NCBI GenBank assembly: GCA_904063045.1
Contig: CAJFCJ010000006.1
Span: forward strand, 4,852,408 to 4,916,407
Source: Dimorphilus gyrociliatus
Taxonomy: Eukaryota > Animalia > Annelida
Direction: 5' to 3'
DNA length: 64,000 nucleotides
The position numbers were made by a program, and so were the translations under genes. Shown here piece by piece: positions 7,917 to 63,154 of the stretch; positions within the stretch are counted from its first letter, which is position 1; each line of letters starts with the position of its first letter. The notes beneath the pieces are model-generated. The model was not told the DNA's origin and searched no databases. It saw nothing but the letters and a program-made list of their open reading frames with translations.

Positions 7917-9880
7917 TTAACTTGTTTTCGATTTCTCGAAACAGTTCATGAAATTTCGAAGTTTAAATAAGCCTTCATCTACAGTTAAATCTCCTTTCAT
8001 CCAGGTAACTATGGGAGAACTTTGTTCCAAAACGAACTCTCTAAACTTCTCCCATGTGACCTTGACCGTTAAATTAACAGTCAGGTGATTCTGTTTTTCC
8101 TTCGAATTTTCAACTAGTATAACTCCGTTCCTAATTTGTACATAAATATATTCTTTATAATCAGGAAAATAGAACTCAGCGATGTCAGTTAAATGTCCAC
8201 ATTCTTCAATATTAAATTTAAATCTAAATAAGTTGAACAAAGTTGCCGGTTTCATCGAGTTAACGGCGCTTATTTGCCTTTGTTTTGGTATATGCGTATC
8301 TATAAGCCCGGCTTGTTCTAGAGCTGTTGTTAGATAATAATTTCGAGAATTGGCGCTTGTTTGACGAGCTGCGAAGGCTTTAAGAGCCTCTAGCCTAATT
8401 GATTTAGCCTCTGTATCAGTGGGATGAACGTTAAGAACGTGAGTAGACAATTCTAAAGCCCACCGTAGATCGTTGACTAACGCCTTTCTAGCTGCTAAAT
8501 TTGCGTAATATGCACCCCCGGCTAATTGAATGATCCTCTCGCTCCTTTCATCTCTGGTAAGTGGATCAAGATTTGAAATATCTCCGTCAAACCAGCCTAT
8601 ATAATGAGCATAGACCGCTTTAGATGACCAAAACACGCTACCATAATATTCTGTAAGCCAATCAGTTTTGAGTGATGCCGTTAATTTGACACGACGAGCT
8701 ATATCATCAGGGTGCATGTCTTTATTCATCCAACGAACTGTTTGATCGTGTACTAATTGAATGGCGTCTCGATACTTTGTTAATAGATTGTAAATTTCTT
8801 CCTCGCCAACAATTGGTTTCGTATGGCTAGGTATCAAGTATTTTGGTCTAAGAGCTCTTATCTTATCTAACGATTTAGCCCATTTCATTACATCTCTACT
8901 AGGAGTTCCTCTTATGGCATAAAGATTGGGAAATGATCTATAAAAGTCGTCTGCGCAGAAAAATGCTTTCCATTCTTCTACCCATACACCAATCTGATCA
9001 GGAGTCTCGCCAGGTATGTGTACCAACTTAACTCTTAAACCAGCTATGATTTCGTCACTTTCATCTCGTTTTAATAGTCTATTTGGAGGAATGTAGCCAA
9101 ATGTAGCATCTATACGAACTTCCGGACCAATGCCTGAATTGATATGATACGGTTTAGGTAATAAAATTCCAAATTGTCTTATCGCTCTTCGAAATATTGT
9201 GTCCGAAGTAACTAAATAACGTTCCATCTGATCAATTAACATTTCGTGAGCCCAAATTTCAACGTTTTTCGAAGAATTACGTAAAAATGCTTCAGCTCCC
9301 ATCACGTGATCTGCGTGATTATGGGTGTAGATAATAGCTTTGATTTCTCCAACATCTACAGTCTTGGAAAATGCTTCTAGAATTTTTTCAGCTGAATCAA
9401 TGCTCTCAGTCGTGTCAATTATGATACTCCCCCGAGGAGCTTTGATGAGAATAGAATTGGCCAACGCAAACCCTATAGCCATATAGATATTGTCTGTTAC
9501 CTAGGGATAATTTGTTATATTTAGCTATTTATTCATTCACAAACAATAACAACACAAAGAAATTACCTTGTATATTATTGGTTCTGAAAATTCTAAAGAG
9601 TGTTCCTTAAGTTTGTCGTGAGCATCAACGTCTCCCAAAAGCTTATTTACATGATTTGGCGAAGGGGATAGTAAAAAGTATAAACATAAAACGGCTACAA
9701 TGCAAAATGAAGCTGCTCCAATTTTATCCCAGTGGCTAAGAGGAGGAGTTCCTTGCTGTAATTGAACAAAATATATACCTTATAAATAATATAAATACGT
9801 ATAGTTTTTCAATTGTGTTTTTGTATACAAACCGTAAAAAAAAAAGCCCTTTTCTTTCGTTCTGTGCTTAGTTCTACCAT
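7917..9880 (-). CDS. Alkyl/aryl sulfatase (SdsA1/BDS1-type metallo-beta-lactamase fold with SCP-2-like C-terminal domain) with N-terminal membrane anchor
   Basis: YTHNHADH (HxHxDH), GETPDQ, FPNLYAIRGT, IPSH, YYGSV, Y.GWFDG motifs. Exons 9833-9880, 9567-~9755 (hydrophobic IGAASFCIVAVLCLYFLL) and 7917-9500. Confidence 0.85.
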
Positions 9881-30319: not shown

Positions 30320-31636
30320 ATGGCCGCACCTATTCAAATATATAAAAAAACAATATGCTGTTCAATTTGCGGTTTCCAGAAGAAGAAAATTTCGAAAGGT
30401 CAGGAATTTTGTGAAAATTGTCAGCCGGATCGTTGCGAACAATTGATGTTGATTAAAGATTATTCATTATGGCTACAGGAGAATTTAATGAATGAAATGA
30501 ATGAAAATCGTAAGAAATTGAGACGGAACAGAGAGAGGTTATTTACAGACGATGAAATTGACTTTATTCTTGAATATATAGATAAAGAAGAAAAATCAAC
30601 GTTTGAGTTTATTCTTGAGAATGAAAAGGCTCGCTTTAAAAGAGATTTTAACAGGCAAATAAAAGAATTACAATGTAAAGTTGAGAGCTTCTTCCTAGAG
30701 AAACGAGCAACTTTAAAAATATTCCAAGACGATGAACAAACAGAGAATGCAAATTATAAAAAAGACATTTCATTATTAAATAATTCCAAATGGATTATAG
30801 AGAAAAAACTAAGTATAATCTTACGTCATATTACATATCAACCTCGTCAGTATGCTCTGGGTAATTTGAGTATTACTGGAAAATCTGTTCAATTTGTAGG
30901 GTTACAACAAAAGGATATGAAGAATTGCAAAGCTGTAAGGGGTCTTTGCGTATTTAATGAAAAAATATTTATGATAAAATGGTCAAACTTTAATCCAACT
31001 GTTTCTATTGTTAGCGTTTACGATCTGAAAGGAAATTTTATACAAAATTTAAGCAAAACTTCTAATGAATTTACTGCAATAGACGTTACAAACGATGGTA
31101 AATTTTATATTGCAGATATGACAAACAATTGTGTACTAGAATCAGTTGACTGCACTGATTTTAAACCACTTTTTAACATTGACCACCCTCAAGGCATCTC
31201 AATTGGTTCAGATGGTATATTTATAGCTTGCGACGATCCACAAACTTCCAGAAAGCATTTAATTAACATGTACAAATTCAGTTTCGACGGTCAACTATTG
31301 TATCATTTTGAAGATAGCTATAAGTCGCTATTCAAGGTATGTGTGTCTGGTAACAATATCATCTCAACTCATGATATTGACAATGAGATAACAATATTAG
31401 ATACAGTAACTGGTAGAAAGATAAATTTATTACTGGACAAAGGCTATACTCCTATAGGAGTTTGTTCACTTCCCAACGAATCATTCGCAATTGCCAACTA
31501 TAACAAGAAAAGTCTTTCAATTTATGATAAATCTACTTCAGAAGTATGTCAAATATCTCTAAATGAAAAACCTGTTCACTTGGCTTTCTACGAAAATGTT
31601 AACCACTATTTTTTAATATGTCATCTTTTGGAATAA
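30320..31636 (+). CDS. Single-exon TRIM-NHL-like protein: Cys-rich N-terminus, coiled coil, NHL/beta-propeller repeats
   Basis: 438-aa ORF; CxxC...CxxC N-terminus; E/K-rich helical middle; AIDVTNDGKFYIAD, HPQGISIGSDG and PIGVCSLPNE repeats. Confidence 0.7.
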   Translation: MAAPIQIYKKTICCSICGFQKKKISKGQEFCENCQPDRCEQLMLIKDYSLWLQENLMNEMNENRKKLRRNRERLFTDDEIDFILEYIDKEEKSTFEFILENEKARFKRDFNRQIKELQCKVESFFLEKRATLKIFQDDEQTENANYKKDISLLNNSKWIIEKKLSIILRHITYQPRQYALGNLSITGKSVQFVGLQQKDMKNCKAVRGLCVFNEKIFMIKWSNFNPTVSIVSVYDLKGNFIQNLSKTSNEFTAIDVTNDGKFYIADMTNNCVLESVDCTDFKPLFNIDHPQGISIGSDGIFIACDDPQTSRKHLINMYKFSFDGQLLYHFEDSYKSLFKVCVSGNNIISTHDIDNEITILDTVTGRKINLLLDKGYTPIGVCSLPNESFAIANYNKKSLSIYDKSTSEVCQISLNEKPVHLAFYENVNHYFLICHLLE

Positions 31637-32852
31637 CTTTCAATTCTATCTTACTCTCTTCCTCCTCCTCCTCCTCCTCATCAACCTCTTTTTCATTTAT
31701 CTTTATCTTCTTCATCTTTATGCGTTAACACTAAGAACAAATTCATTAAACAAGTAAACTTTTTATTCGTTCAAAGAAGTCAAAAAGAACATATAGCTAT
31801 TGTGTTTAAATATATCGATATTCTGAAAGGTGAATTCTATTTGAACATAGATTTTACTTGAATCATTATTTACATAGGCCTAATTGTTAATAGAAGCATA
31901 CGTATGAATATTTCGAATATTTTTATGTTCTACTTTCTTCTTTCATGTTCATTTTTTTCATTTTATTGAAACTGTGATGGAAAGTTCTTTTGTGTAAAAC
32001 ATAATCATCTTGTACAAAAAACATTGTGATGTTATCTTATCAATTATTAATATTATATTTATGTTTTTAATGGAATTTTACAGATTTTCTCTCTATCGTA
32101 AATTTGGTATATTTGTTCTAAACTTATAAATTAGTTTAGTGTATACGATATGTTAGATTTTTTTTATTTTCTTTCTCAAAGAATACTTCAGAATAAAAAA
32201 TTAAATCTGGATTCCAGTTCACCTATTAAAAAGTCTATATGTTAATTGCGTTGGAGCAAAACCCAGCTATTCGCTAACTCTCTTTAAGTTTAAACCTTTC
32301 GTTATATACTTTTCTAAATTTACTTTATGGTTATTTGTCGCAAAAATTCAAATTTTCAATAAAACCAGCGCACTTAAGAAAAGTTAGTGCAAGGTTATAA
32401 AGCCTATTGAATAGTTCATTCGGTAGTTAACAATAAAAACTGTTTCTAACGGGTTCTTTAATTTTGCTGAAAAACTTTTAAAAACATATCAATTTTGTGT
32501 GAGTTGATGAATGAATTCTAATTTCAACCATTTTGTAGTAATATCCCACTTTGATTGGTAAAATTGATTTAATATTTTAAGGATTTTCGATTGAATTGTA
32601 TTCAAGCAAGTATGAAACTACTGGGGAAATTGATTTTGTCATTGAAGTTAGAGTTTGTTCGCCAAAAACAGCATTAAAAACATTCTTTTAGTATTATTTG
32701 CATGTTGCTTTATTGAATTTTATCAAATTTGTCTAAAAAATTTCAACCAAAAGAGAGTTCTCTTAACTATCGAGTGTAATATGCAAATGAGATACATATT
32801 CGAAATATCTATATGCGTGTTATTTATTAATTCTTGCGAATTTTAATTCTTT

Positions 32853-32993
32853 AGTCAGTAGAGTAAGTCACTGGCCTGTTACCCCCAAAGCAGGGGATAA
32901 CAGATATGATGACAAATAGGTGATGATTCTTGACATGAATTACACCTGACGATCGTTGGGACCGTGTTGAGTTCTTTCGATCAATGTCTGATA
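32853..32993 (+). ncRNA. Box C/D snoRNA candidate with U8 (SNORD118)-like four-stem architecture
   Basis: SL1 GTCAGT/ACTGGC; SL2 CTGTTA-CCCC/GGGG-TAACAG; box C ATGATGA 32906-32912; SL3 AGGTG-TGATTC/GAATTA-CACCT; SL4 GATCG-GGGAC/GTTCT-CGATC; box D CTGA 32988-32991. Intergenic, ~140 nt. Confidence 0.7.
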
Positions 32994-33147
32994 ACTTCTC
33001 TAAAACTATCCTGATAAATGCATTATAAAAAATTATATATAAAAACGGTTTGAAATAATCAAACCTTTTATTTGTTTGAACTCACCAAATTAAACAACAA
33101 AACGTCAGTCTAAATTTTATTATAAATCCCTGGTCGTGACAAAAACA

Positions 33148-34059
33148 TTATACTGTCTCTAAAGAGTGCTCATCAGCAGTAGAGGATTTCTCATCGGTCA
33201 AGTGACTAATTTGAACCGGCTTACGAATTGATTTCCCCTTTAGATAGATAAATGTATTCTCTCTTTTCCAAGCATAGTATATAGTCATATGATATCGGCA
33301 AGTAATCTACAGAAGCAATTACTCTCGTCGAAACATTCTTTTAAACTTACGAAGACTTACCGTAAACCAAATAAAAAAAACAACTAGAAGACAAACTGAG
33401 AGAAGGATTAATGCGATATGTAATCCTTTTTTGTTCTCTTTACCAAAATGTAAAGCACCAACAAAACAAAACCAAACGCTAGCAATTGTGAATGGTAGAA
33501 GAACAGAGAAACAGATCAAATCAAAAAGAATGTCCACTCTATCACCAGGCTCACTTGGTCTTCTAAACCACTAACAATTTAAAGAATACGTTAGTAACTA
33601 AAAATAACTATTCCATAAAACCTATATATGTATTAATACATATATATATATATATACTTCAATGCAAGATCGTGCTCCTTTATTTAATTCAAATTCTGTC
33701 TGACAAACTTCACAACGAGCCATATTAGCTGAATTTATCCACATCTCTAGGCAATTTCTATGAACAATTGCCATAGAACCTGAACATTTACAGGGTGATA
33801 TAAGATCATTTATGTTATTGGGTTCATGGCAAATTCGGCAAGTTTCAATACTCCTTTCAGATGACAATCTATTAGATAAAACACGAAAATATCAGTACCT
33901 TTATATGATAGATTATAATTAGATTTACGAGTGAATATCTTCTAATATATTAGGATTCGATATCGTCCTTAATTCTTCATAAACTGGATCACTTAAAGAT
34001 TCTACAGAAGCTAAAGGTGCACATAAAAAGTTTGATTTTTGAGCATAAGCATACGCCAT
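33148..34059 (-). CDS. Membrane-associated RING-CH E3 ligase, MARCHF2/3-like
   Basis: CRICHE...LISPCKCSGSMAIVHRNCLEMWI...CEVC, two TM helices, and a spliced last exon (CRYH...WKREN) ending in the PDZ-binding motif ETV*. Confidence 0.88.
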
Positions 34060-41162: not shown

Positions 41163-41964
41163 GACGTAAGAAAAGTCAATGTATGTATCCCTTCACCAAT
41201 AGAAAATTGCCTTGTTTGCCAAAACTCTACTTAAGCAGTCATACGAAAGTTGAAGAATGAAAGAGAAAGGGAGTCTAATTTGAAGAAGTTAATAACGATA
41301 ACTAACCAATCAGAATTTAGTATTCACTTTGGAGCTAATAGGTGGCGCTTCATAAAAGTGTTTTATTCAAGTTTGAATTTTTGGAAGAGACTTACAACTA
41401 TTTCATAAATTGTTTGCATAACGAATAAATAAATAATACATTAATAGTTAAAGGTAAGATTATTGGTGAGATAATCAAATATTTTACCTTTCATTTATAG
41501 GTCAATGTATTTAAAGCAAAAAGTATAAAATTTACGGAATGATGAAAGGTTTATTTCATTCTTTTTTTCCTATTTGCCTATTAGAAAATATCGATTTTCC
41601 GATAAAGAACTCACGAATAAAACTGTAAAGAAAAAGAAAGTCTTAAGAATTGTTTTATTCTCTGGATAAATCAAATAATAGATAAACAATACGAAAAATT
41701 CTATCATTCGATAATTTGATCCGTAAGATCATTATTTAGAATATTTCATAAGATTCCTAAAATGGCAAGAATTTTTCTTCTCAACTATGATCATATCCTA
41801 GATTCTTTCAAAGAAAATCTACTTTCCCATTGAATGCAGTTAATAACAAGAAACTTATTGCACGTAGCCAGTTAATAATGTTTGACCAATAGATGGCACC
41901 ACAGCCATATGAATCTACATTTCGTCTTCTCTCTGTTTTTTGCTGTCGCTTCTATTCGTTGCAG

Positions 41965-62107: not shown

Positions 62108-63154
62108 TCATTCGTCTTCGGCTCCTGGCTTCAATTCTCTTAGCTCCTTAATTTGCTTAATTAAATAGGCCTTTTCGTCGTTGAATTGTTCGTCATCTGC
62201 ACGGTCGGTATGAAATTTGCTCAAGAAATCGACGAGTTTCTCCTGATTGCGGAGGAGAATGTCAAGAATAGGTTTAGGTTTCGACGGATTGGCTACGAAA
62301 ACTTTAAAGACGTGAAAGGCCTCAAACTGGATGTTGCGCGATTTTTCGCGTAGAAGGCACATCATTAATTTCAGATTAGCTGCGCTTGATATATAGCGCG
62401 TCATCACGCTGAAGTTGTGCCGATCCAACAGTAATTCGCCCAATAGTTTCAAAGCTTGTCGTTTTGTTACATAATTCTCAGAGTTGAGTAGTTTCTGGTA
62501 ATGCTCTTCGAACACTTTCTCGTAGTTATTTTCCAAGAATTCGGCTATTAACATCTTATAACTTGACCGTGTAAGAAGCTCTTTGAACGTTGAAAAAGCG
62601 TCAGAGGCTATGTCAAAAGTAGACATCTCCACATAACTAAATAATTTATAAAATTCTTCGGAAGAAAGTATAATTCTCGCTAAGGCTTCATGCCTTGCAC
62701 ATTCTCTAAGCATTTGACCGCAACTTAGGGCTATTTCTTGATTCTCATAGCCTTTAAGTAGCATAAAGAGAACTTGAGGATTACTGCAAATATGTTCAAC
62801 TGTAGGAGACCTGGCACCTATCTGACGTCGTAAACACTTGTTAAAGATCTGCGCAACATCCTTTTTAGCTTCAAAGTCAACCGAGTGCAGATTCTCCACC
62901 ATCATTCTCAACATTCCCCCTGGTCCACCAGTAGCTTCTAATTCGTGACATAACTGCGCCACTATTTCCGCTTGAGGTTCTTGTTCCCCTGATCCACAAA
63001 TATAGTTCTTTATCATTTGAAGTGTTCTGGAAACTTCATCCTGAGCCTTCGATAATTTCTTCTCAGAGTCAGCTGCCTTCCTTAATGCCTGAAGGTTTTC
63101 AGCCAAATGACGAACTAGTTCGGGGTTACTTTTCGATTTTCCGAAAAGTGGCAT
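62108..63154 (-). CDS. CAB39: Calcium-binding protein 39 (MO25), intronless
   Basis: [76 protein letters not shown]; uninterrupted 348-aa ORF. Confidence 0.97.

Follow-up and report, generated by a model that had tools for sequence, protein, structure and literature searches.

A predicted, conserved U8-like box C/D RNA gene in the annelid Dimorphilus gyrociliatus

Introduction

The small nucleolar RNA U8 is needed for the maturation of 5.8S and 28S rRNA, and its mutation (SNORD118) causes a human leukoencephalopathy. An initial annotation of a 64-kb stretch of the Dimorphilus gyrociliatus genome (64,000 nucleotides of contig CAJFCJ010000006.1, hereafter the window) proposed a divergent invertebrate U8 homologue at positions 32853-32993, raising the question of whether this annelid encodes U8. 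The literature is divided on the distribution of this RNA. A wet-lab review (PMC8993069) and a 2025 preprint (bioRxiv 10.1101/2025.10.10.681432) term U8 vertebrate-specific, and among the open questions listed in the review is 'why is U8 not conserved in non-vertebrates?'. Computational and RNomics work suggests a wider range: one study describes U8 as occurring 'from Cnidarian to human' (PMC3273799), and CeR-2 has been proposed as the nematode U8 (PMC2943600). The premise of novelty on which the locus was put forward therefore agrees with the reviews but not with these last two reports, which already place U8 outside vertebrates, so that an invertebrate U8 would be no new kind of RNA.

Results

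Anatomy and fold of the unit

The 141-nt unit is, as predicted here, a real and conserved plus-strand box C/D RNA gene with the layout of U8 (Table 1). Its minimum free energy (MFE) fold consisted of four hairpins at -47.0 kcal/mol. The z-score was -3.96, and not one of 200 dinucleotide shuffles gave an equally stable fold. All four hairpins of the initial annotation were recovered, the third at 32917-32948 rather than 32918-32947, together with the perfect box C it had placed between hairpins 2 and 3 and the box D after hairpin 4. The kink-turn elements that serve as a general test for box C/D snoRNAs, UGAUGA and CUGA, were present and invariant in relatives, with a flanking stem of 2 bp only (U53-A141 and A54-U140, read from the sequence). 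For U8 the expected layout is RUGAUGA at approximately nt 55-65, CUGA a few nucleotides from the 3' end and an RNA of approximately 135-140 nt; the unit, with box C at nt 54-60 and box D at nt 136-139 of 141, matches this arrangement. Hairpin 3 stands where vertebrate U8 has its LSm stem-loop. Within the window the unit is single copy and is therefore not a SINE.

Table 1. Coordinates of the predicted RNA gene, its parts and its flanking features (window positions; nt, position within the unit; negative numbers, position relative to the unit)
Feature	Position	Strand	Basis
Predicted 141-nt box C/D RNA (U8-like)	32853..32993	+	Full-length match to Rfam U8, ends of conserved block, fold z
Hairpin 1 (nt 2-23), 5' region with GUCAG	32854..32875	+	MFE fold of free RNA
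Hairpin 2 (nt 24-51), CCUGUUA-CCCC...GGGG-UAACAG, equivalent to U8 hairpin 2	32876..32903	+	Covariance-model alignment
Box C, AUGAUGA (nt 54-60)	32906..32912	+	Read directly (ATGATGA); aligned to box C of U8 model
Hairpin 3 (nt 65-96), 12 bp, loop UUGACAU	32917..32948	+	MFE fold
Hairpin 4 (nt 99-130), loop CGUGUUGA	32951..32982	+	MFE fold
Box D, CUGA (nt 136-139)	32988..32991	+	Read directly (CTGA); UCUGAU aligned to 3' end of U8 model
TATA-like TTATTTATTAA (-33 to -23)	32820..32830	+	Read directly
Octamer ATGCAAAT (-72 to -65)	32781..32788	+	Motif count
Second octamer ATGCAAAT, inverted (about -155)	32696..32703	-	Motif count
3' flank pyrimidine run ACTTCTCT	32994..33001	+	Recurs in all three relatives
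Terminal (3'UTR) exon of RINGv (MARCH-type) gene	33009 to ~32563	-	Spliced contig

Covariance-model evidence for U8

No Rfam family matched anywhere in the whole 64-kb window at gathering thresholds. In a permissive scan of 32600-33200, U8 (RF00096) was detected at 20.1 bits (E = 0.25 in 601 nt), the top bit score among nine permissive matches, one of which (proV, minus strand) had a lower E-value. The alignment was full length, placing model positions 1-135 on 32852-32992, and retained UCAGU, CCUGUU...CAG, AUGAUGA, GGAC and UCUGAU. The 5' domain thus carried both elements sought, with UCAG near the 5' end, in the region of hairpin 1, and the CCUGUU and closing CAG of hairpin 2 kept; the inner stem of hairpin 2 differs from that of the model yet pairs. 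Hairpin 4 corresponded to the final hairpin of the model, in which GGAC...C was retained. None of the Rfam families on the plus strand of this interval fitted better than U8, and the nearby sub-threshold matches to proV (minus strand), SCARNA7 and sR3 were not taken as identities.

The covariance-model search suggested at the outset returned U8 as the best-scoring family over its full length, but the score is half of the 41 bits at which RF00096 membership is gathered. In an all-family scan of 21 kb the same match had an E-value of 8.9. Ten matches in that scan reached an E-value of 10 or better, this one included, and several were clearly spurious. Calculated for U8 alone, E is approximately 0.25/4227 per 601 nt, or 0.002 per 21 kb, and approximately eight chance U8 matches of such a score are expected in a genome of this size. 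The covariance model alone leaves the U8 match at noise level. Moreover, it scores the same motifs from which the homology was first proposed, and so quantifies the resemblance without independently confirming it. A SNORD108-like match at 41757-41826 had no recognisable box C or D on reading and was rejected as spurious.

Conservation in relatives

Comparison sequences were contigs from public sequencing runs (X1, X5, X6 and X7), a source that carries no information on strand, ends or abundance; those of relatives bearing the conserved block measured 205-253 nt. The X6 contig (organism A) was identical to the window. X1 and X5 were coral metatranscriptomes from two studies, whose contigs of 220 and 205 nt had matches to the window confined to 32848-32993 and 32853-32993, respectively; identity inside the block was 96-98%, and the flanks on both sides were unalignable. 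The X7 contig, from a close relative (organism B), matched 32804-33001, with four listed changes in the 141-nt unit (C82U, C91U, A97G and G106U) compared to seven in the 17 nt immediately upstream and one at 32852, an approximately 10-fold lower divergence of the unit than of the adjacent flank. Strong cross-species conservation is thus confined to the unit, and the match ends in the relatives' contigs give the conserved block the ends that the U8 alignment predicts.

The listed differences are lower bounds, accounting for 4 of 7, 3 of 6 and 12 of 19 of those counted in the contig summaries. With A64C, U65A and U104C from X1 and X5, seven substitutions were listed within the unit, of which four fell in loops or linkers, two at helix-end wobble pairs and one converted a G-C to a G-U pair (C91>U in X7, affecting G70-C91 of hairpin 3; C82>U lies in a loop). 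Across the three relatives there were no listed changes in nt 1-63, which include hairpin 1, hairpin 2 and box C. The variant sequences kept the fold (-46.0 and -43.6 kcal/mol), and compensatory double changes were absent, the relatives being close. Since the coral runs of two studies hold a copy 96-98% identical to this annelid unit, the sampled corals may have carried a relative of D. gyrociliatus, such as a dinophilid-like worm.

Strand and genomic context

The unit has a clear preference for the plus strand. Boxes C and D occur on that strand only, its fold is 6 kcal/mol better (-47.0 versus -40.9 kcal/mol; the minus-strand fold has z = -3.47), and five G-U pairs together with the C91>U change are compatible with the plus strand alone, becoming A-C mismatches if the minus strand is read.

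The locus had been described as intergenic, which is accurate for the plus strand only: the unit lies antisense inside a transcribed minus-strand 3'UTR exon of a RINGv (MARCH-type) gene. The X6 contig ran continuously from 33011 to approximately 87 nt past 32650, and its joints from 33009 to 33064 or 33085 correspond to canonical minus-strand GT-AG introns (33010-33063 and 33010-33084; donor TTTG/GTGAGT, alternative donor AAAAG/GTTTGA, acceptor TTATCAG/GATAG), so that X6 contains RNA. An ATTAAA at approximately 32569-32574 lies near the end of the terminal exon, and the RINGv domain itself was found in the exon at 33622-33867 (minus strand, 5e-16; exons searched singly). Contigs covering the unit can therefore be explained by the antisense mRNA. 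On the unit's own strand no host gene or intron was seen, in agreement with the original description, and no joint skips the unit; the nearest plus-strand gene, an NHL-repeat open reading frame (ORF) at 30320-31636, ends 1.2 kb upstream. The RINGv 3'UTR intron (33010-33084) is itself variable, with two alternative donors yielding 54 or 75 nt and an unspliced form in the same run.

Two further minus-strand genes of the window are single ORFs. That at 62108-63154 encodes Mo25/CAB39 in one uninterrupted 348-aa frame (Pfam 1.8e-136), and is thus intronless here; an exact copy of its protein was located on contig CAJFCJ010000006.1 of assembly GCA_904063045.1, which PMC10212961 assigns to D. gyrociliatus, a dinophilid annelid. 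The other, a 521-aa ORF at 7917-9482, combines a metallo-beta-lactamase fold with alkyl-sulfatase dimerisation and C-terminal domains (Pfam 3.5e-32). Enzymes of this type are mainly bacterial, and the gene may be horizontally acquired or simply a conserved eukaryotic gene.

Flanking elements

Upstream of the unit, a TATA-like element and two octamers (Table 1) are weakly suggestive of promoter features. In the otherwise unalignable upstream flank of X1, TATATA occurs at approximately -31 to -26, although the region is 70% A+T, which makes the TATA evidence weak. The octamer occurs 11 times in the window compared to 5.9 expected, with two copies within 160 bp upstream of the unit, a placement noted after the fact. 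Downstream, the pyrimidine run ACTTCTCT is identical in X7, while X1 and X5 carry CTTTTTTT after a 1-nt indel in flanks that are otherwise unlike; a function in 3'-end formation is possible.

rRNA pairing and the LSm loop

Pairing was assessed against 118 rDNA-bearing metagenome contigs from other organisms, a set that does not include the rDNA of this species, with real 28S 5' ends taken from metagenome contigs (for example CGACCTCAGATCAGACGAGATT followed by an anchor motif). The initial annotation had suggested a test of complementarity between the 5' end of the RNA and that of 28S rRNA. Duplexes of nt 1-23 with four 28S 5' ends of other organisms (RNAduplex) reached -9.8 to -12.6 kcal/mol, no better than shuffles (p = 0.14-0.59). 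A G-U-permissive scan of all 11-mers against the 118 contigs returned only degenerate, G/U-rich matches at scattered positions, and pairing of the 5' end with the 3' extension, a feature of vertebrate pre-U8, was likewise not above shuffles (-7.6, -2.0 and -6.6 kcal/mol). A scan of IMG/VR viral contigs for the LSU 5' end gave two contigs of no use. These 'viral' sequences (L001, 6300-6348; L002, 2520-2607) end in the eukaryote-type LSU rRNA 5' end ACCCGCTGAACTTAAGCATAT and are probably chimeric assemblies.

No conserved 10-mer with Watson-Crick complementarity to rRNA was found in the 118 contigs at nt 80-93 (beside D') or nt 122-135 (beside D), which argues against a methylation guide. A single conserved rRNA match was found, between 18S GACUCAACACGG and nt 110-120 of the loop of hairpin 4. 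The match is approximately at chance level (0.2 expected) and lies 16 nt from box D, where a guide element would not be placed. Extended to the loop sequence CCGUGUUGAGUU (32962-32973), the pairing with this conserved 18S segment covers 12 bp, one of them G-U. The segment is the helix-31 loop, which carries the hypermodified pseudouridine, and the match could represent an additional contact.

That loop 3 does not exactly match the vertebrate LSm octamer had been recognised from the start. The loop, UUGACAU (UUGAUAU in X7), also differs from the U8 consensus loop, UGAUUAA. The covariance model sets UGAAUUA opposite the consensus UGAUUAA, but in the annelid RNA this segment is paired, as the 3' side of the stem.

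Discussion

Identity of the unit

The architecture of the unit fits U8 rather than an ordinary guide, with a 53-nt 5' domain, a central box C, a terminal box D and a CCUGUU...CAG hairpin, and we consider a divergent U8 homologue the probable identity, if by no wide measure of confidence. The homology originally proposed is supported by the best-fitting Rfam family, the ends of the conserved block and the layout, and is weakened by the sub-threshold score, the 28S pairing and the LSm loop. These same three shortcomings favour a lineage-specific, conserved long box C/D snoRNA that is not orthologous to U8 and whose likeness would come from C/D boxes, length and short motifs, and another target is hinted at by the 11-12 nt over which the hairpin-4 loop can pair with 18S. 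Such an RNA would nonetheless have to be colinear with the whole U8 model in element order, length, 5' UCAG and CCUGUU...CAG hairpin, to have its strongest constraint in the 5' domain, as in U8, and to find no better-fitting Rfam family on the plus strand, and we regard it as unlikely. The shorter methylation guide of approximately 72 nt raised as an alternative in the initial annotation (32920-32991) does find its motifs, GTGATGA at 32920-32926 (GUGAUGA in the RNA), a D' box CTGA at 32946-32949, a C' and the D box at 32988, and generic archaeal C/D models match there weakly (sR3, 12.7 bits). However, conservation extends 67 nt further 5' of its C box without a listed substitution, that box is sequestered within the 12 bp of hairpin 3, and none of the 118 rDNA-bearing contigs offers a conserved complementarity of at least 10 nt directly upstream of D' or D, which together make this reading highly improbable.

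The block might also act in cis, as a structured 3'UTR element within the RINGv mRNA on the minus strand, with no plus-strand RNA at all. The sole transcript demonstrated is the spliced minus-strand mRNA whose last exon covers the block, and the minus strand folds well too. The strand evidence nevertheless points the other way, in the perfect boxes C and D on the plus strand only, the better plus-strand fold and the pairs that would become A-C mismatches, and in X1 and X5 the block is almost unchanged amid flanks, UTR there or not, that cannot be aligned; a purely 3'UTR element is therefore very unlikely. Non-functional DNA that folds and carries short motifs by chance would be in keeping with A+T-rich sequence and an unremarkable covariance-model E-value. 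It would hardly be expected to diverge approximately 10-fold less than the adjacent flank in a close relative, to survive amid unalignable flanks in a more distant one and to fold at z = -3.96, while the differences and flanks of X1, X5 and X7 counter their origin as contamination from the same genome, and chance is scarcely credible as an explanation.

Comparison with known RNAs

Like vertebrate U8 (SNORD118; RF00096), the annelid unit is approximately 140 nt long, with a UCAG-containing 5' end, a CCUGUU...CAG hairpin before a central box C, two hairpins separating boxes C and D, and a UCUGAU close to the 3' end; it apparently has its own gene rather than being an intron product. It differs in scoring 20.1 bits where the gathering score is 41, in the loop after box C (UUGACAU rather than the LSm-type UGAUUAA), in the 5'-terminal sequence after GUCAG, for which the fit to 28S is not above chance, and in the antisense position of the gene within the 3'UTR exon of another. 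CeR-2 of Caenorhabditis elegans, compared here by its description, is likewise an independently expressed, U8-like C/D RNA of an invertebrate, in which a single hairpin precedes box C, two more separate it from box D and the likeness to the LSm motif is partial, but its TMG cap, nucleolar location and ITS2 processing phenotype come from experiment, whereas the annelid RNA is predicted (PMC2943600). The Tetrahymena U8 candidate TtnuCD26 was similarly recognised by Infernal/Rfam comparison and structure, and its LSm motif is not conserved; it is 98 nt long, lacks hairpin 2 and has demonstrated expression, whereas the predicted annelid RNA keeps hairpin 2 (PMC3273799). Ordinary box C/D methylation guides have the two boxes in common with the annelid unit and probably bind the same core proteins, but in the annelid unit box C is preceded by 53 nt of structured 5' sequence, and no conserved antisense element lies beside D or D'.

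A working model and its implications

The transcription, cap, proteins and target of the unit are inferred from vertebrate U8. By this analogy, its own promoter, comprising the TATA-like element at -30 and the upstream octamers, would drive transcription from A32853. Boxes C and D would form a kink-turn binding Snu13, Nop56, Nop58 and fibrillarin, and these core proteins would take the RNA to the nucleolus. There, the invariant 53-nt 5' domain, with its GUCAG end and CCUGUU...CAG hairpin, would act as a pre-rRNA chaperone for 5.8S/28S maturation and not as a methylation guide.

We see an even chance that the unit is a true spiralian U8 orthologue, nested antisense in a 3'UTR exon, and that U8-dependent 5.8S/28S maturation predates the vertebrates. 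The finding is incremental and concerns no new kind of RNA, but the conservation of a U8-like gene in an annelid whose genome is very small would be spiralian evidence that U8 is of ancient origin. It would also separate the old parts of the RNA (the 5' domain, hairpin 2 and the C/D boxes) from possible vertebrate additions (the LSm loop). If the gene is a true orthologue, it would contradict the term 'vertebrate-specific', which the disease literature still applies to U8, and would provide a compact invertebrate in which U8 function could be dissected.
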